A stretch of 64,000 nt of DNA from Sminthopsis crassicaudata (lineage: Eukaryota): the NCBI RefSeq assembly GCF_048593235.1, contig NC_133619.1, positions 636,842,558-636,906,557 of the forward strand, read 5' to 3'. Each line of letters opens with the position of its first letter. Positions within the stretch are counted from its first letter, which is position 1. Below are positions 8,901-19,377 of this stretch, in pieces. The position numbers and the translations under genes are program-made. Below the pieces are notes generated by a model. That model made no database searches and was not told the origin of the DNA. It was given only the letters and a program-made list of their open reading frames with translations.

Positions 8901-9186
8901 AGCCCCCTAGCTGACCCTTAGTCCCCCATGGTGGTTGAAGTGGGAGGGCCAGGGCAGGGGTGGGAGGACAAGGAAGGAGGCAGTCCTGCCCCTGCCCTAT
9001 GTCTCCTCTCTCCCAGGGCAGGCTGGCTACGCCATCTACAAGTCCATCCCCTACGGAGCTCTGGACGAGGTGATTCCCTACCTGCTTCGCCGGGCCCAGG
9101 AGAACCGAAGCGTGCTTCAGGGGGCCAGGAGAGAACAGGGGCTGCTGAGCCAGGAGCTCCTCCGACGTCTGTCTCGCAGCCCTTAA
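5915..9186 (+). CDS. PRODH2: Hydroxyproline dehydrogenase (proline dehydrogenase 2), 10 coding exons, ~461 aa
   Basis: Exons 5915-6100, 6225-6418, 6547-6682, 6762-6848, 6933-7013, 7117-7284, 7360-7526, 7607-7717, 8726-8811, 9017-9186 (1386 nt, all GT/AG, phase-consistent). Motifs RLLVDAEYT, FGVKLVRGAY, LMVASHNEES, FGQLLGMCD, YKSIPYG, YLLRRAQEN. ATTAAA at 9245-9250. Confidence 0.97.
8096..8215 (+). mobile_element. MIR fragment in PRODH2 intron 8
   Basis: aagtcac...gcctcagtttgctcatctgtaaaatggg...ggttgtcgtaaggctcaaatgagat is the MIR core. Confidence 0.75.
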
Positions 9187-9599
9187 GGCATTGCCCCGTG
9201 TTCCCGCCTCATCTCTGGCCTCCCTTCTCACCCCAACATCCGACATTAAAGGTCCCTAAGAAACCCCCTCTGCCTCTGTCTACGGCTGGGCCAGGAAATG
9301 CGCTTTGCTCGTCGCCGCCTCTGGACCTCAGTCACTTCCTCTACAACATGGGGGGGGGGGTTTGGAGGGGCTCAGTCTGAGCCACTTGGAGATGAGGGGC
9401 CTAGAACCAGAGTAAGGGCTGAAGGGAGGATGCTCTGAGAGCATCCAACAGAGGGGGGCTGCCCCCACAGAGGCTGAGAAGATACCTCGGTTTCTGAGAC
9501 CTGTGAGGTGCCTCAGGACAGGGCTTTAAGGCCCAAGGTCTTTTGAGGCTTCGTTGGCACAATGGGCAGAGGTCTGAGGGGTGCCCATTGGCCTACTTT

Positions 9600-12525
9600 G
9601 GGGTCTCTGGCTGAGGAAAGCCTGGACGGTGTCTGCACCCCCCAGAGGGAGGTCTGGAGAACGGTAAGGGGACAGCAGGGTCGAGAATGAGGGGTACAAT
9701 TCCATGTCCGAGACCCTTTCTCAGGGGTTTCTGACTAGGGAGGGAGCTATGCCATCTTTGAGGCCAGCTGATGGAGGCTGAGGGAAGCTCCTCCGGGAAG
9801 TCAACCAGGTTAAGAATCACTCCGTGGAGTCACCACAGGGAGCCCCGAAAGGGATCCCTCTGTTGGTTCTCTCCGGTCTTTGGGAAGAAGCTTCCAGGGC
9901 AAAAGTTGAGGGATGGGTACCTTTACTGAAGTCCCTAACAAGGGAGCAGCTCAGTGCTATATCTGGATCTGTGGGTTCTCTGACTGGAGGGGAGGCACGC
10001 TCTCTGGGGGAGATTTAGGAGGCACCTCAGATGGAGAACTGAAGAGGCTAAGGGGGAGGCCCTCAATTTATGAGGCTCAGGGAGAAGCCAAGAGGCTCCC
10101 TGTGGAGTGTTTGGGGAGGATGTCCGAGGGGGTACAATCCCTTGAACTTTGGGCTCTTTGAAGCTAAGGGGAGAATCACTCAAGAGTGAGGAGCTCCAGT
10201 CTGTGGAGTTTTGGAGGTCATTTGGTTTACAAGCTGAGGGGAATCTTGAGTTTGTGGGGGTCTCTGGGAGGGTAGAAAGGGTCTCTCAATCTATGGAATC
10301 TGTGGGGTGAGGGGAATCCCTGTTTGTAGTCTCCAGGGGATTGGGGATCCACAATCTAGATGTGGGAGGATCCTTTTTGAGAGATTCATTCCACAGGGGG
10401 ATGGGGAGGTGGGGACTGTGTATTGGGGTAAGGGGCTGGGAGTCCGAAATAGAAGTCCTTAAATTACGGTCTCTGGAAAGGGGCTCTTGGTCTGTAAGAT
10501 CTGAAGGGACTAAGTTTCTGTATGAGGTCCGGGAAGCTACCCTTGATTTCTAGGATGGGTAAGGGGGGCTTCCTGTCTGTTAAGGGGGTCCTTTGGTCTC
10601 TGGAGTGAGATAGGAGTGTCCCTTGACTTATGGAATCTGAGGATCTATGGGGTTTGAGGAAGGAATCCATCTATGGAGCAAATCTCTGGCTCGGAGCTGA
10701 GTGGGAGGGGGTCCCTCCATCAATGAAGAAGCCCTTTCTGGGAGGTCCTAGTGTGGGATGAAAGATGGCTCCCAGGTTGAGGAGAGATCCGAAGTCTAGA
10801 GAGCTTGGGGAGTTCAGGCTGTGGGATGTGAGGGTACCTGTCTCAGGGACGAAGTGAGCAGGTCCTATAGTATGTAAGGTGAGGTTAAGGGGGTGTCTCA
10901 GCCTGTAGGGGACCTCTGGTCTCCAGGTTGTGCAAGGTCTCTGTGTGTGGATCTTTCAGTCTTTGGGGGATAGGGTGAGGAGGGTCCTGAGCCTATGGGT
11001 TGGGGTGAAGCTAAGTCCCTTAGTCTGTGGAGTAAAGTGAGGGGGATCCCTTAGCATCTAGGAAGGCGTTAAAGGGGGTCCTTCTTCTGAGAGGGCTGCC
11101 CCTCAATTTCTAGGATAGAGGGGGGTCCTTTGGTCTGTGGGATAAGGAGGGTCTCTCAGTCTGTGAGAAAGGATTCTGTGGGTCTCGGAGGTATGGGACC
11201 TTCATTCTGTAGAATCCCTGAGGAATCCTTGGTTTTAAGGTGAGATAAGAGATCTTTCTGATCTATGGGGTCTGTGGAGGGCTCCCTCAACCCGGGTGGT
11301 TGGAGGAAGGTTTGGGGGATGTCCCTGAAGTCTGTGGGGTGAGGAGACTTCCTCCTCAGTCTGTGGTTGGGGGAGGGAGCTAGTTCTGGGGCTCTAGGTC
11401 GGGGTGAGCAGAGAATCCCTTATTTATAAGGTCAAGGTCTGGGGGGGGAGGGAGGTGTTCCTCAGTCTCAGATGGGAGTTCTTTGTCTGGGGAATTATGA
11501 AGCCCCTGACTCTATGGAGCAAGGTGGAAGGGACCCTCAGTCTCTAGGGGAACGAGGACCCTTGCTCTCTAGGAATGATCCTTCAGTCTCCAGAGGAGAA
11601 AAATGAGGTGGATCTCTGTCTATAAGCGGGGGGAGGGGGATCCCTCAGTCTCCAAGAAACAAAGGCCCTCAATCTCTACAGGGATGAGGAGACTCAAGTC
11701 TCTGAGGGGTAAGGGAAATTCTAGAAGGGGGAAGAGGGAGGGTCCTGTCAGTCTTTGGGGAATGGGAGTTTCTGACGAAGGTCTTTTGAGAGGGCGAAGG
11801 AGGTCTTCCAGTCTCTAAGCACTAGGACGTCTCATTGCTAAGGAGGGTGAGGGTGGTGAAGGTTTCTGTCTCCAAGAGGGCGTGGAAGACCCTCCAGTGT
11901 CTGAGGGGGCCAGGGGGGTCCATCTGTCTCTGGAGGGTGCGGGCGGGGGGGATCCACTTTCTAAGCTGGGCCAAGGAGTCTCTAAGGGGGCATGAGGGGG
12001 GATCCTTCAGTCTCAAGGGGTCCATTCTGTTTCTACAGCAGGACGAGGGGGGTCTCAGTCTCTAAAAAAGGTAGAAGGGCTCCCTTTAATCTCTGGGGGT
12101 GAGGGAGGTTCATCTAAATCTCTAGGGGACATGGGAGGGGTCTCTTCAGTCTGTGGGGGGTGAGGGGGGTCCATCTAAGTCTCTGAGGGGTGAGTAAGGG
12201 GGTCTCTGTCTCTGGGGATGAAGGGAATCACCAGAGGGGGTGAGAGAGGTCTCAGTCTCTAAGGTGGGGTGAGGGGGCCTAGGGGGCGTGGGGGTCTCTG
12301 GGGGGAGATGAAGGTGATCTCTAAGGGGGGAGTAAGGGAGGGCTCTCAGTCTCTTGGGGGGGGGTGAGGGAGTCTCTAAGAGGAGGTGAGGGGGTCTCTA
12401 AGGAGGGAGAAGGTGGTCTCTAGGGGGGTCGGGGATCTCTAAGGGGAAGATGAAGGGTTTCCAGGGGGGATTTAAGGGGGGGTTTCTCAGGTCTTTAAGG
12501 AGGGGGTGAGGGGGTCTCTCAGGTC
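9600..12525. repeat. Degenerate G-rich, strand-biased minisatellite-like tract
   Basis: Recurrent ~25-30 nt motifs of the type gagggggtccctcagtctctagggg and gtctgtgggg, most regular at 12060-12525. Confidence 0.55.
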
Positions 12526-12584
12526 TCTAGGAAGCTACAGGCCGAGGAGCAGGTTCTGTCTCTGTCCACCGCGGCTCCGGCGCC

Positions 12585-12780
12585 TCTGACGTCACTAACG
12601 GTCCTCAACGACCCCGGGTCCCCTCGACACCCCCACCACGTTTCCTCGGCTTCTAGGCTCACGAGCCGCTCCCACTGGGCAGGCGCAGTGAGCGTGTGGG
12701 GGAGGGGAGGGCGAGCCAGGCCACGCCGGCATCGTGCGCATGCGCCCCTTCTTCTCCCGCCCGCCGCCCTTGACAACGAG
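12585..12780 (+). promoter_or_regulatory. CpG-island promoter of the TEX14-like gene with CRE, MYB-like and NRF1 motifs
   Basis: TGACGTCA 12587-12594, TAACGGTC 12596-12603, TGCGCATGCGC 12735-12745; CpG-rich from about 12540 to 13700. Confidence 0.6.
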
Positions 12781-13330
12781 CCCGGTCCCCAAACCTAGGT
12801 CGGGGCGGTGCCCAAACGGCCGCCTTCGAGGCTGCTTCCCCCCACATCTCCCCCTACGTCTGTCCCTCGTCCTCCGTCCTCCCCCCGCTGCCCCCCCACT
12901 TGTTGTGATCCCTCTACTTGAGTGCCCCCCCTCCCCTCCTCTCCCTCCCAGAGCCCTCTTGGGAAACCCCCAGACCCTCCCCTCTGACCCGCGCCCCCGG
13001 ATCCCCTGAGACCCCCCCTTCCACATCTCCCCCGGGACTCGCCCTGCTCCTCTTCGGTCCCGCCCGAATCCCCCCCAGCGCTTTCCTTAATTTCCCCGCG
13101 CTTTCCTTAATTTCCCCGCGCCCCCCCACGACCTGCAGACCCTCCCCCCGTCCCGAGGCCGCCCCCCTCCCTCTTTCCCTCCCCCATCTGCTCTTCCCAG
13201 ACCCCGCCGTTCCCTTCCGGTGACGCCGGAGCCTCCTGAGCGCGCGCTCCCCATGGGCCTTCTGCCCGCCCCCAGCCAGACTCTCCCCGGCGTCCCTGGG
13301 CCGGCCCTGGGCTGACCGCCGGGCACGCTC

Positions 13331-16300
13331 ATGCCCACGCTGCCCCCGCACTGCCCCGTGGAGCTGGGCTCCGTCAGTGAGCGGGACAGCCCCCTGGCAC
13401 AGCTGCACCAGCTGGCCGTGGTGGGCGGGCCCTGCTGGCGGCTGGCCAGGGTCCTGAAAAAAGGTGACCCGCCCGGGTGAGGGCTGGGCCGGGGGGAGGG
13501 GCGGGGGGCGCCGCGCCCGTCCTGAGGCTCCGTGCCCCTCTTGCGCCCTCGCAGGGGTCCAGGTGGATGGGGAAAACTCGCTGGGGCAGACGGGCCTCTT
13601 CCTGTCGGCGCTGCTGGGCCGCGCGGGCGCCGTCCGGCTCTTCCTCCGCTTTGGAGCGGACCCCAACCAGTGAGTGGGCGGGGCCCGGCACCCTGGGCGG
13701 GGCTTCCCCCCCCTCCAGCGCCTTTATCTCCCCTCGGTCTCTCCTCCAGCCGCTGCTTGGATGGAAGCACCCCGGTGCACGCGGGGGCTTTCTCCGGCCA
13801 CTGCCAGGTCTTCCTGTGGCTCCTGGAGGCCGGGGGGGACCTGAGGCTGCACGACCAGCAGGGCTGGACCGCCGGGGACTGGGCCCAGCAGGCTGGGGCG
13901 GAGAGCTGGCAAGTGAGCAGGGGGCAGCGGCGCAGGGGGCCCAAGGAGGCGGGGCACAGAGGGCCCACGGAGGCGGGGCACAGGGGGCCCAAGGAGGCGG
14001 GGCCCAAGGGGCCCAAGGAGGCGGGGCACAGAGGGCCCAAGGAGGCGGTGCACAGGGGGCCCAAGGAGGCGGTACACAGGGGGCCCAAGGAGGCGGGGCA
14101 CAAAGGGCCCAAGGAGGCGGGGCACAAGGGGCCCAAGGAGGCGGAGCCCAAGGGGCCCAAGGAGGCGGGGCACAGAGGGCCCAAGGAGGCGGGGCACAGG
14201 GGGCCCAAGGAGGCGGAGCCCAAGGGGCCCAAGGAGGCGGGGCCCAAGGGGCCCAAGGAGGCGGGGCACAGAGGGCCCAAGGAGGCGGGGCACAGGGGGC
14301 CCAAGGAGGCGGGGCCCAAGGGGCCCAAGGAGGCGGGGCACAGGGGGCCCAAGGAGGCGGGGCACAGGGGGCCCAAGGAGGCGGGGCACAGGGGGCCCAA
14401 GGAGGCAGGGCACAGGGGGCCCAAGGAGGCGGGGCACAAGGGGCCCAAGGAGGCGGGGCGCAGGGGAGGCCTTTACCCTGACAACAGTGGTCAGCGAGCT
14501 GGCCCACTCCGACGGGAGACTCAGTGGGGCTCCACTGGTCTGGGGCAGGGTGGGCAATGTCAGGACCCTGGGTCCGGCTGCCCGGCAGCCACAGACGCCC
14601 CCTTCCCCCCCAGCCACAAGTGAGGGACAGCCCCCATGCTTGAGGCGCAGAGGTTGGGCCTTGGTGTGGCCAGAGGATGCTGGGGCCAGTCTAGGGGGCC
14701 TCGGCTGGGGGTGCCCATCCCCAGGAGGATGGCGGGGGCTTCAGAAGAGGGGCCAGGACTGGCACACCCTGATGCTAACACCAGACCCTGGGGGCTCCAG
14801 GGCTGCCTAGCGGGTAGGGGGTCTTGCCCCGGAAAGCCCCCCTCGCGGCCCCCGTGAGGCCCGGGTCGCCAGCGCCTGTCTGCCGGCTCCATCTGTCCCC
14901 CCTCGTTCCAGGTGTTGGAGCTCCTCCGGGAATGCCGAGCCCGCATGTCCCTGCTGGCCCAGGGGGGTGAGACGGCGCTGGCCTCGTCCCTGGGGGAGCT
15001 GTGGGGGCTCCGGGCAGGATCCCTGGGAAACCTGCACCTGGCCCTGTCCTCCCAGCTCCTGCCTCAGGCCGAAGGGTAATGGCTGATTGCTCACTCCTTC
15101 CCTCCCTTGCCTGGACCCTTCTCCCACTAGCCTAGGGGAGGGAGCCCGGCTGGGACTGACTTCCCCCCCACCCCCAGGTCACTGTGGCCCAACCGGATCC
15201 AGAGGTCGCCCCAGGTGCCCGGGCTGGGATTCGGCCAGGTAGGCGGGAGGTGCTGGTGGGGGAGGGGGAGGGGGTGCCCCGGGGGGACCTGCTAAGCAGC
15301 GTTTCTCCCCCCAAAGCTGAGCAGCCTGCGGCCTCTCGGCCTGACGTCGGGGGTCCCCCTGGTTGATCCTGAGGAGTTGCTGCCGGCGCAGGGGGAGCCT
15401 GACCGGACCTATGAGTGCGGCGCCCACACCATTATGGTCAAGTGAGAGCAGAGAAAGGCCTCGGGACATCTGCCCAGCCCCCCCCAGTGATCCCCACCGG
15501 AGCCCCCTCCCTCCTGCCCATGCCCCCCCAGGACCCCGGCCTCCCCATCCTGGGCCTCCCCTCACTCCTCGATTTCATCTTCTGTCCTAAAGCCTCTTGT
15601 GGAGGGGACACCCGGTGACTGTTCGGAAACTGAAGCCAGCCCCCGCCAGGGCCCTCCCAGACCTGCTGCTGTCTGACCTGAAGCACTGCAGGTACTGCCT
15701 GCTTGGGGCCGGCCTGGAATGCCGCCCCCTCCTCCAGGGGCCTGCTGGGCACCCTCTCGGGGCTGGGGCCCACCAGGAGCTTCCCTGCAATCCTGTCTCC
15801 ACAGCCTCCTCCATCACCCCAACTTGCTGCTGCTCATGGCCCTGAGCCCCTCCCCTGACCTGGCCGGGCTGTGCCTCCTGTTTGAGCCCATCCAGGAGGG
15901 CTCCCTGCACCGAGTGCTGCACTCCCCCGGGGTGAGCTGGCTGGGCCGGGGTGCGGGGTGCCCCTTCCCCCATGGGCCTGGTGCTAGCATCAGGGGATGT
16001 CAGTCCCGGGCCCCTCTTCTGAAGCCCCCGCCAGAGCTGGCAGAACCGTCCCAAGGGAGCCGAGGACGGGGGCCAGAAAGGGACGGGGCAGAGGGCAGCC
16101 CGGGGATGGAGGAGGGGAGGATGGAGGAGCTGGGGCCTGGGCCAGCAGGGACATTCTGGCTCGGAGACCTAAAGGATAAGGTGAGGGATGCAAGAGTGAT
16201 CTCAGCGACCCCTGGGGCACAGTGGAGTAGTGAGACCACCTTCCTCCTCACCCTGGGTCAGAGCCGGGGGCGTCTCAGGCCCTCATCCCTGCTCCTCTGG

Positions 16301-18804
16301 GGGCAGGATGGGGATGTTGAGGCACCCGGAAGGGGAGAGGCCGTGGCGGATTCACTGACTGTGCCCACTGCCTCCTCTCCCCACTAGGATGTGGCAGGCC
16401 CCAAAATCCCCCCGGGATTCACCCCAGGACAGCTGCTGTTACAGGTGCTGGAGGCCCTGCTCTTCCTCCAAGGCCAGGCCCGGGCCCACGGGGGCCTGAG
16501 CTCCCACGCCGTCCAGCTGGTTCGACCAGGGCTGGCCAAAGTCAGCAACCTGGAGCACGGGCGATCCCTGCCCCGGCCCCAGTGAGTGAGCCCAGTGGCC
16601 CGGCTGTGCTCCGCCCTACCCCCCCCCTCAGCCCTGCCCCCCCGGCCCTGCTCCCTGCCTCCCCTTTACTCTCCTCCTTGCTCTGTAGGCCAGAGAGAGC
16701 AGTTCCTTGGGGGGGCCCAAGGCCAGGGCCGCCCCCATCCTCTGAGTTGTACCCCTGGCTGCCGCTGGAGCTGATTCGGGGAGACTCACCCACCCCGACT
16801 TCAGACTTGTACAGTTTCTGCATCTTGACCCAAGAGGTCTTTACTGGTTGGTGCTCCCCCCCACTGTCCTCCTTCCCAGACACCTTCACTGTCTGCATGA
16901 CGGGGCCACGCCCCTAATCACAGCTTGATTTCCCTCCCCAACCCCACTCTTGTCTCCTGTCCCCCCCCCCATGTTGCAGGGAGCCTTCCCTGGGCTGGGC
17001 AAGAAGGCCTGCAGGTGAAGGCAAAGCTGGAGTCCGGGGAGGGCCCGGCTCTTGCTCCCCAGGTGCCTCCAGCCTACCAAGCCCTGGTCAAGGCAGGCCT
17101 GAGGGTGCGGCCCCGAGACCGGAAGGGCAGCCTGCAGGACGCCCGCTACAAGTTGAGGGTGGCCTTGGCTCAGGTACAGGGTGGGGGGGGCACGAAGCTG
17201 GGCCAGGGCGGGGAGGGGGGCGGCCCGGCGCCCGCAGGCCGTGACAGGGTTGTCTGGTCCCCAGGAGTCTGCGCTTAGAGAAGCCTCTGTGGGCAACTTG
17301 GGCAGCATCTCCTCAGAGCTAAAGACCCCGCCACAACCTCAAGCGGGCCGGGAAGGCGACCACCCCACGGCCCATTCGCCTTGCCCTCCCCACGCGGAGC
17401 AGCTGCCGGAGCTGGATCCCAAGGTCACTAGCACACCTAGGCCTCCGTCCCCCAAGATGGCTCCGAACCCCAACCCGTCCGAGGTAATGGAGGTGCTGGT
17501 GGGAGGGAGACGGGGGATCGGGCCAAGGCCATAGAGAGAGGAGGCTCTGTCTCTCCGATGCTCCCTAGACCTTGAAGTCCCCCGAGAGCGGAGGGGCCTG
17601 GGGGAGCACTTGGAGCCCCCCGGCCTTGGACTCAGGAAGCAGCCTGACCCTGGGCAGCAGCCTCAGCCTGAGCTCCCAACCTGAAACGGCCTCGGCAGAG
17701 AAGAGGAAGCCGGCCAGTCCCGAGGTAGGGAGGCCCCGGCCTCTGGCCACCCGCCCTGCAGCCTTCCGCTCGCTCCCGGCGGGCTGACGCAGCCCCTTCC
17801 CCCCTCTCTGCAGAGGCCGGCTCTGCTGACCAGTCTGAGGGAGTCGGCCTCCCTGCTGGGCCAGGCCCAGGGCTCCCTGGAGAGACTGGAGAGGAGGTTC
17901 TCAGCCAGGATCCGGGCCCTACAGGATCTGCTGGGAGATGGCCCCGAGGCCTCCCAGTCCACCTGCCCCCAGAGTGAGTTGGCCCGAGGGGCCCCTTCCT
18001 CCCCGCCTCTTGCCTGTCAGTCATTGAGCTCCTCCCTCCCCCCCTACCTCCCTCCTTTTACCTCTCCCACCTTCCCCAGGTGCCCGAAGTTTTCAGGAAT
18101 GCATTGATCTGGCGGCCCAGGCCCGGCGACTGGACAGACAGGAAGGGAGGACCCAGGTAGGGATTGGGGGAAGGGCGGGATTGGGGCCCTGGGCGCTAGG
18201 GGGATCCTCTCCTGATCTCTGAAGTGCCTGAGCAGGCCGGCTTGCCTTGGTCCCCTGACATCTTGGGGCCTCGAGAAGCCCTGCTACTGCAAGGTCCCAT
18301 TAGGGACGGATTAAGTGCTTTAAGCTGCGGAGGGGGCTGGGTGTATTTTGGGGCGCTCTAGTCCAGCAGCCATTAAGCAGGACGTGGTGGGGGCACACTG
18401 GCCACACAAGATGACCAAGAAAAAGTGGCTCCTCTTGGGCCGCTGCCCTAATGAGGCGCACTGTGGGTGTTCAACTAGTATGAAGCACCTACTGTGTGCC
18501 AGGTTGTGCCCCCTTTCCTTCCCAGGTCCTGGTCCCGGAGCTATCCAAAGAGAGCCCCTTCACCAGCCTGCAAAAGTAAGATCCGCTTTCCCGACCCGCT
18601 CCAATAACTTACTTTGGGGTCCCCCTCATGACCCTGACCTCGTTTCTTGATCTTCCCCAGGCTAGACCTGCTAGAGGAGATCATCACAGAGCTACAGGGT
18701 GAGGTGGGGATGGCGGATGGGCTCTTCCCCTTTCTGAGGCGTTGATCTGGCTCTGCTGTGACCTCTGACTCTGTCCCTCAGGAACCCCCAAACCAAGGAG
18801 CTGA
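13331..18804 (+). CDS. TEX14-like protein: N-terminal ankyrin repeats, pseudokinase domain, helical C-terminus; 18 coding exons, ~751 aa
   Basis: Exons 13331-13463, 13555-13669, 13750-13912, 14912-15075, 15178-15238, 15317-15441, 15593-15691, 15805-15931, 16388-16581, 16689-16846, 16980-17173, 17265-17483, 17569-17724, 17814-17973, 18080-18156, 18526-18575, 18661-18698, 18782-18804 (2256 nt, no stops, all GT/AG). [69 protein letters not shown] and SDLYSF parallel TEX14 as recalled. AATAAA at 18861-18866. Confidence 0.88.
13928..14460. repeat. 24-bp VNTR (~22 copies, GGGCACAGGGGGCCCAAGGAGGCG) in the TEX14-like intron after the third coding exon
   Basis: Near-perfect tandem units; translate as GHRGPKEA repeats in ORF 13532-14623. 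Confidence 0.95.
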
Positions 18805-19377
18805 GAGTGGATCTCCGGGCTGAGTCCAGCTGGTGTCGGCCCCCTGACCCCAAACCCAATAATAAAGCTTCCCCCAGCCCACCACCTTTCTCTGCCTCTC
18901 ACTACAGCGCGGATAATAATAGCACGAGACAAAACTTGGTTTTCACTTTTATTTGGGGCCGGGGGCTCGGCGGGACACTCTCTCAGACACGCGCACACGC
19001 ACCCCCCCAAAGCCCTCGAGGGCACATTCGCAACTGCACATACAGGGGGAGGGGGCAGGGCATGCTGGGGGATGCTGGGGCTGGGGGAGATGAAGCGTCT
19101 TCATCTTGCCCCAATTAGTGCAAGAAACCCCAGACAATGTGTGGGGGGAGGGCAGAGAAACTACGTACGACATGAGATCACATCGGAACCAGTTTACAAA
19201 GTTAGAAAGTTGAGTAATTTGGGAAAAAATTACAAAATGGATTTGAATTGGGGATGGGGGCCCCAGGGCCAGTGATGGCAGGAGGGTCCGTGGTCATCAG
19301 CAGGCACACCCAGCTAGGGCCCCAAAGCTTCCCATTCACCAACATTTTACAAAAAGGAGGCGAGGGGATCTCCGGCC

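Follow-up and report, generated by a model that had tools for sequence, protein, structure and literature searches.

The question raised by this locus is whether the gene found between PRODH2 and ARHGAP33 in Sminthopsis crassicaudata is TEX14 itself, a non-coding remnant, an extension of its upstream neighbor, or a second TEX14-family gene in its own right. The window analyzed here is a stretch of 64,000 nucleotides (contig NC_133619.1, positions 636,842,558 to 636,906,557 of the forward strand), and the gene occupies window positions 13331-18804 on the plus strand, where 18 exons, which we rebuilt independently from the raw sequence and which are separated throughout by GT..AG introns, join in a single phase into a coding sequence (CDS) of 2256 nt. 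The CDS encodes 751 amino acids (aa), and its sole stop codon is the terminal TGA at 18802-18804. TEX14, the textbook example of how a protein can convert cytokinesis into a stable intercellular bridge, is generally treated as standing alone. We consider it very probable that the window harbors the functional dasyurid ortholog of the vertebrate gene known as TEX14-like (Arhgap33os), an ancient paralog of TEX14 whose product would serve as a dead-kinase scaffold with a separate role.

Relationship to TEX14 and age of the duplication

We entered the databases with exon 9 alone and then with the orthologs that it returned; true TEX14 proteins, 1400-1600 aa in length, came up in a profile search led by the lungfish protein. 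The maximum likelihood tree of 53 proteins (IQ-TREE, LG+C20+F+G4, 693 columns, unrooted) is split by a branch with 100/100 support into a TEX14-like side (32 rows), to which the window gene belongs, and a TEX14 side (21 rows). The former contains amniotes, three amphibians, lungfish and two sharks, and the latter amniotes, coelacanth, sturgeon and five sharks or rays. Its sister is the Antechinus gene (100/99), and it falls within successive marsupial (100/99), mammalian (100/100) and amniote (100/99) TEX14-like groups. The branching within each clade is broadly that of the species tree, except that at one weak node (83/48) the TEX14-like protein of lungfish branches outside those of the sharks. 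Moreover, both clades contain one protein from each of six species, namely, Eulemur rufifrons, Equus asinus, Panthera leo, Dasypus novemcinctus, Pelodiscus sinensis and Erythrolamprus reginae.

Since sharks and tetrapods occur in both clades, the duplication is best placed before the split between cartilaginous and bony vertebrates, and since several species possess both genes, the window gene is an ancient paralog rather than a retrocopy or a moved TEX14; its 17 introns likewise rule out a retrocopy. The initial annotation had proposed a second TEX14-family gene that arose as an old duplicate and not by retroposition, and had pointed to a grouping inside the TEX14 orthologs as the sign of the opposite; the window gene lies outside the TEX14 clade, and the proposal holds. 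The mammalian TEX14-like stem branch is very long (0.68 changes per column), which suggests, as far as sequence comparison can tell, accelerated change of this gene at the origin of mammals. The same stem coincides with the replacement of HRx by HGG or HAG in the catalytic loop and with a Pro/Gly-rich insert in the activation segment.

The N-terminal half of the window protein is colinear with human (Q8IWB6) and mouse (Q7M6U3) TEX14 at 34-38% identity over about 515-560 aligned residues, bearing out the similarity across the N-terminus, ankyrin repeats and kinase lobe that had been described for this gene. Both proteins have an N-terminal PxCPVxLG box, three ankyrin repeats, a GFG linker and the dead-kinase motifs HRx, SxxAV and NLE. 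It could accordingly be argued that the window gene is TEX14 itself, translocated in this lineage, as TEX14 is its best reviewed match and several RefSeq models of the gene are named 'TEX14 isoform X'. We regard this as almost certainly wrong, given that the 100/100 branch separates the window gene from all TEX14 proteins, with the six species mentioned above represented on both sides of it. The two genes further differ in locus; the 751-aa protein is about half as long as TEX14 (1400-1500 aa); it lacks the GPPxxxY motif discussed below; the beta3 Lys of TEX14 is Arg in TEX14-like; and the C-termini are unrelated, that of TEX14-like having its own conserved helices and a terminal LDL[LM]xEIIxEL.

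Transcription, gene model and selection

RNA contigs from public runs under two organism labels, coded X1, X5, X6, X7 and X10, were aligned to the window. All 17 introns appear in several independent runs as GT..AG skips exactly at the modeled joints, introns 3-17 being spliced in X5, X6 and X7, introns 1-2 in X6 and X10, with X7 adding a further case of intron 1. Run X1 retains introns and therefore contains unspliced RNA or DNA. The start of the gene lies in a CpG island at about 12400-14000 (GC 0.65-0.76, CpG observed/expected ratio (o/e) 0.56-0.78), an in-frame TGA at 13313-13315 precedes the ATG at 13331 by 18 nt, and an AATAAA is found at 18861, 57 nt past the stop codon. X10 contig depth rises about six-fold, from 32 to 206, at about 13156, which fits a start site inside the CpG island. 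In the program-made list of open reading frames (ORFs), the gene nowhere appears in one piece, and the list is crowded with long spurious ORFs that a 24-bp minisatellite in intron 3 creates on both strands. Thus, the exon count, the GT/AG borders, the stop-free 751-aa frame, the CpG promoter, the AATAAA and the failure of the ORF list were all reproduced as the initial annotation had given them. The features are as follows, each exon being backed by a joint seen in RNA in addition to the evidence named.

12400-13330 (+): CpG-island promoter region and 5' untranslated region (5'UTR); GC 0.65-0.76, CpG o/e 0.63-0.78, X10 depth step at about 13156, in-frame TGA at 13313-13315
13331-13463 (+): exon 1, ATG and N-terminus; exon model, RNA joint 13463/13555
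13555-13669 (+): exon 2, ankyrin repeat; weak sub-threshold Ank match on the exon alone, Ank_2 passing on the whole ortholog
13750-13912 (+): exon 3, ankyrin repeats; weak sub-threshold Ank_2/Ank match on the exon alone, Ank_2 passing on the whole ortholog
13929-14466 (no strand): 24-bp minisatellite of 22.4 copies within intron 3; removed by splicing in RNA (joint 13912/14912)
14912-15075 (+): exon 4, conserved linker; linker dN/dS 0-0.05
15178-15238 (+): exon 5, linker with the GFGQL motif common to TEX14; TEX14 alignment
15317-15441 (+): exon 6, linker and start of the kinase-like N-lobe; TEX14 alignment
15593-15691 (+): exon 7, beta3 strand VTVR and start of alphaC; TEX14 alignment
15805-15931 (+): exon 8, N-lobe and hinge; exon model
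16388-16581 (+): exon 9, alphaE, degenerate catalytic loop HGG..SSHAVQL and degenerate DFG (NLE); kinase and TEX14 alignments
16689-16846 (+): exon 10, Pro/Gly-rich activation-segment insert, PLE and alphaF; weak sub-threshold PK_Tyr_Ser-Thr match alone, the family passing on the whole ortholog; TEX14 alignment
16980-17173 (+): exon 11, end of the C-lobe; structure model
17265-17483 (+): exon 12, disordered Pro/Ser-rich region; structure model
17569-17724 (+): exon 13, disordered, with a conserved 11-letter motif; sequence comparison
17814-17973 (+): exon 14, conserved long helix, clade-specific; structure model and C-terminus comparison
18080-18156 (+): exon 15, helical; structure model
18526-18575 (+): exon 16; exon model
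18661-18698 (+): exon 17, terminal motif LDL[LM]xEIIxEL; C-terminus comparison
18782-18804 (+): exon 18, coding part with stop TGA; exon model
18861-18866 (+): polyadenylation signal AATAAA; sequence

The minisatellite (91% matches) stands in an intron of 999 bp in the window vs 282 bp in Antechinus. At the intronic points 15459 and 18503 (X5, X6, X7) and 16631 (X5, X6), the RNA contigs continue into identical foreign letters, which might reflect an alternative exon, a polymorphic insertion or an artifact of the assembly graph. A 20-bp tandem duplication at 13074-13121, in the promoter/5'UTR region, is seemingly polymorphic, as one X10 RNA contig is without 20 bp at 13078.

We located the 18 exons in the corresponding loci of Antechinus and Dromiciops and computed the ratio of non-synonymous to synonymous change (dN/dS) by the Nei-Gojobori method. 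Both species preserve every splice site as well as the open frame; the 'GA' after exon 18 in Dromiciops is not the loss of a donor, because exon 18 ends at the stop codon. Such conservation of splice sites and exons in two other marsupial genomes is far beyond chance. The ratio comes to 0.075 for the Antechinus comparison, from 25.5 non-synonymous and 109.5 synonymous differences, and to 0.12 for Dromiciops, with every region at 0.04-0.19 in the Dromiciops comparisons, and the most constrained part is the linker that joins the ankyrin repeats to the kinase lobe (0-0.05). Therefore, the gene is under strong purifying selection. Missing spliced reads, a dN/dS near 1 or frameshifts in related species had been named as the marks of a spurious gene; what we found instead is every junction spliced, low ratios and an intact frame. 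Together with the tree, this gives TEX14 a sister gene as old as jawed vertebrates and under strong purifying selection in marsupials.

These data also bear on the idea of a decaying or non-coding locus, either a transcribed unitary pseudogene or an antisense lncRNA. The symbol Arhgap33os is of the kind given to non-coding antisense genes, and we found no catarrhine protein. However, a frame that is open across 18 exons in three marsupial families, the dN/dS values above, the correct splicing of every intron and a domain-level conservation that extends back to sharks make such a locus very unlikely.

It might also be held that the exons are alternative 3' exons of PRODH2, giving a read-through product, and not an independent gene. 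Fusions of Pro_dh with the ankyrin or the ankyrin-plus-pseudokinase part exist among the RefSeq models of pig, bear, desman and squirrel monkey, which points to either PRODH2 read-through transcripts or annotation chimeras in these placentals, and in the window low-level RNA occurs 5' of the ATG, where an X6 contig reaches upstream to 12555 and a weak X10 signal covers 12300-13146. On the other hand, the joints listed for the RNA contigs include none that leads from PRODH2 into exon 1 or 2; the start is preceded by the in-frame TGA, covered by the CpG island and close to the six-fold rise in X10 depth; X5 is spliced without PRODH2 signal, and X7 with almost none; and marsupial annotations have two separate genes. 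This explanation thus has only a very small chance of being correct. As for PRODH2 itself, RNA coverage is unbroken over 9081-12514 and in X6 is roughly ten times as deep as over the TEX14-like gene, and the last PRODH2 exon seemingly has a 3'UTR of some 3.4 kb, which stops 0.6-0.8 kb short of the TEX14-like gene; neither AATAAA nor ATTAAA is present in window positions 12300-12700.

Spliced TEX14-like transcripts are found in X6 and X10, where the last PRODH2 exon is very deeply covered, and also in X5 and X7. PRODH2 is a kidney and liver gene. From the deep PRODH2 signal in these two runs it follows that TEX14-like expression is probably not restricted to germ cells, and it suggests that the expression in X6 and X10 may be that of kidney or liver rather than testis.

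Dead kinase, CEP55 motif and a putative scaffold role

Pfam returned only weak sub-threshold matches on single window exons, while on an ortholog of 96% identity both Ank_2 (35.1 bits, cut-off 27.3) and PK_Tyr_Ser-Thr (45.1 bits, cut-off 23.1) pass. An AlphaFold2 (AF2) model of residues 1-520, built on an alignment of 74 sequences, has a mean predicted local distance difference test (pLDDT) score of 77.6 and contains ankyrin helices and a full kinase fold; the ankyrin helix pairs at residues 21-109 score above 84, and the linker at 151-223 is of low confidence. A full-length model with 33 sequences was poor (pLDDT 51.6). In a Foldseek search against Swiss-Prot, human, mouse and cow TEX14 came first (E 6e-17) and ILK next (2e-6). 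The kinase part of the model superposes on EGFR, Src, Csk, Syk, TAK1 and CTR1 at template modeling (TM) scores of 0.7-0.83, depending on the target.

We read the states of the kinase motifs from alignments to MLK4, EGFR and TEX14. The glycine-rich loop is degenerate (ECGAHT), the beta3 Lys is replaced by Arg in all TEX14-like proteins, and the alphaC Glu position is occupied by Asp in the mammalian ones. HRD has become HGG in the window protein, HRA, HRS or HRT in other vertebrate TEX14-like proteins and HRS in TEX14; the catalytic-loop Asn is replaced by Ala, and the window protein has NLE for DFG. As the degenerate motifs are common to TEX14 and TEX14-like, the kinase was already dead before the duplication. 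One may object that the protein is an active atypical kinase with displaced catalytic residues, since the fold is complete, the Arg in place of the beta3 Lys is immediately followed by a Lys (VTVRKLK), and an acidic residue remains at the alphaC Glu position. We consider this very unlikely, because the protein has kept none of the HRD Asp, the catalytic-loop Asn and the DFG Asp, losses that, the first excepted, are common to TEX14 and go back to sharks, and because its glycine-rich loop is degenerate as well.

The C-terminal half is predicted by the full-length AF2 model to consist of a disordered Ser/Pro region followed by helices. A long C-terminal helix is kept from sharks to marsupials and the terminal LDL[LM]xEIIxEL from lungfish to marsupials; we found no TEX14 counterpart of either, and the C-terminal 150 aa have no significant match to any TEX14. 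In the disordered region encoded by exon 13 (17569-17724), an 11-letter motif is kept in marsupials and placentals, which by its letters would resemble a phosphodegron-type DSG motif.

The GPPxxxY motif of TEX14 mimics TSG101 and ALIX on the ESCRT- and ALIX-binding region (EABR) of CEP55 and thereby blocks abscission (PMC6015221). In a strict pattern search, 11 of 14 amniote TEX14 proteins had this motif, near residues 788-896, and neither the window protein nor any of the 31 other TEX14-like proteins (25 amniote and 6 anamniote) did. A TEX14-type block of abscission by TEX14-like is therefore unlikely, and the gene most likely takes no part in bridge stabilization of the TEX14 kind. Accordingly, the germ-cell or midbody role that the initial annotation had suggested finds no support, as the CEP55-binding motif is missing and spliced transcripts occur in runs with a very deep PRODH2 signal. 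An ankyrin and dead-kinase module without the motif that captures CEP55 would represent a second, unexamined use of this module.

With its catalytic residues lost, we infer that the protein would be unable to phosphorylate and would work as a binding scaffold, whose putative docking surfaces are the ankyrin repeats, the dead kinase and the C-terminal helices. Such a mode would resemble that of ILK or of the N-terminal half of TEX14, with the private C-terminal helices perhaps recruiting partners, and the protein would have a role of its own, one not limited to germ cells. By analogy, ILK, in which N-terminal ankyrin repeats precede a kinase fold that has no catalytic activity and serves as an adaptor, is arranged like TEX14-like; however, ILK is only 16-17% identical, belongs to another family and is without the long C-terminal extension, and its partners PINCH and parvin are not implied here.

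Several points weigh against the reading of this gene as an ancient TEX14 paralog with a scaffold role of its own. The tree is without an outgroup, and the proposed age of the duplication depends on the sharks and tetrapods present in both clades. No marsupial TEX14 proper was retrieved, and the coexistence of the two genes in this genome is presumed rather than seen directly. The low-level transcription upstream of the ATG is compatible with some PRODH2 read-through, which is thus possible. The non-germline expression is read from the co-occurrence with deep PRODH2 signal in X6 and X10, combined with what is generally known of PRODH2 expression, a strict GPPxxxY pattern would miss a non-canonical CEP55-binding motif, and the scaffold mechanism is derived from sequence.

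A broader proposal builds on the same paralog, namely, that TEX14-like is a scaffold common to all gnathostomes with a non-germline role, for example in kidney or liver epithelia with active PRODH2, exerted through its C-terminal helices and not through CEP55, and that it has been overlooked because of its loss in catarrhines, including human. We consider this rather unlikely as a whole; if it were true, a mouse Arhgap33os knockout would reveal new biology of this kinase family.

Orthologs, naming and genomic neighborhood

The gene is already annotated in RefSeq and UniProt and bears a symbol in the mouse genus; it is therefore known as a gene and is biologically unstudied in the literature searched. 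Its RefSeq name is 'inactive serine/threonine-protein kinase TEX14-like', used for more than 70 species among those listed, which agrees with the earlier suggestion that predicted TEX14-like models may exist. Named marsupial orthologs come from Antechinus, Sarcophilus, Dromiciops, Vombatus, Phascolarctos, Notamacropus, Macrotis and Monodelphis, and others from dozens of placentals, turtles, squamates, caecilians, a newt, lungfish and sharks. A UniRef entry from Mus spicilegus calls the ortholog Arhgap33os, and a Bos taurus entry calls it 'gene model 1082-like', from which we read Gm1082 as the old name of the gene. The window protein is 96% identical to the ortholog of Antechinus flavipes, 87% to that of Dromiciops, 77% to that of Vombatus and 55-62% to those of placentals; a Sarcophilus isoform is 97.7% identical over 394 aa. 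The high identities to Antechinus and Sarcophilus assign the window to a dasyurid. The common structure of 18 exons, the neighbors PRODH2 and ARHGAP33 and the shared clade identify these annotated orthologs as the same gene. The window copy differs from them in the 24-bp minisatellite of intron 3 and in small indels in the disordered exon 12, and otherwise in nothing of substance.

We found no paper on the function of TEX14-like, TEX14L or Arhgap33os in the literature searched, in line with the description of the gene as uncharacterized. Arhgap33os is listed in an expression table, and its other mentions stand under expression or epigenome titles. Literature matches to 'Gm1082' turned out to be prefix matches to other genes, such as Gm10824, and were discarded. 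SgK424, which we presume to be the second human kinome member beside TEX14 (SgK307), was not used as evidence.

In a search from the squirrel-monkey protein, no catarrhine TEX14-like protein was listed, while strepsirrhine and platyrrhine relatives were; catarrhine TEX14 was well represented in the profile search. The absence of a catarrhine TEX14-like annotation fits a loss in the human lineage without proving it. The apparent lack of the gene from catarrhine annotations would explain the silence of the literature, and would make TEX14-like a candidate human gene loss.

The neighbors are as the initial annotation had placed them, with PRODH2 upstream on the plus strand (Pro_dh exons) and ARHGAP33 downstream on the minus strand (RhoGAP exon). 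Window positions 3499-29353 are colinear with the Antechinus locus, where the called genes are Pro_dh, Ank plus PK, and SH3 plus RhoGAP on the minus strand, and the order Pro_dh, TEX14-like, RhoGAP (minus strand) is common to the window, Antechinus, Dromiciops and Vombatus. The order recurs in Mus caroli, with Pro_dh upstream and, downstream, a minus-strand gene of 1305 aa without a Pfam hit. In the turtle Chelonia mydas, the ortholog is flanked not by PRODH2 and ARHGAP33 but by V-set Ig, EF-hand and ADP-ribosylglycohydrolase genes, and the locus of the snake ortholog has no neighbors within 10 kb. The mammalian position between PRODH2 and ARHGAP33 may be derived. The reptile orthologs (Chelonia mydas and Erythrolamprus reginae) also span 25-37 kb, vs 5.5 kb in the window. 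The tail-to-tail placement with ARHGAP33, which together with PRODH2 on the other side is a trait of the mammalian group, is seen in the window, where the 3' ends converge: the AATAAA of TEX14-like at 18861 (plus strand) and the TTTATT of ARHGAP33 at 18948 (minus strand) lie within 18861-18953, a span of less than 100 bp. These convergent polyadenylation signals are probably behind the mouse name 'opposite strand' (Arhgap33os).

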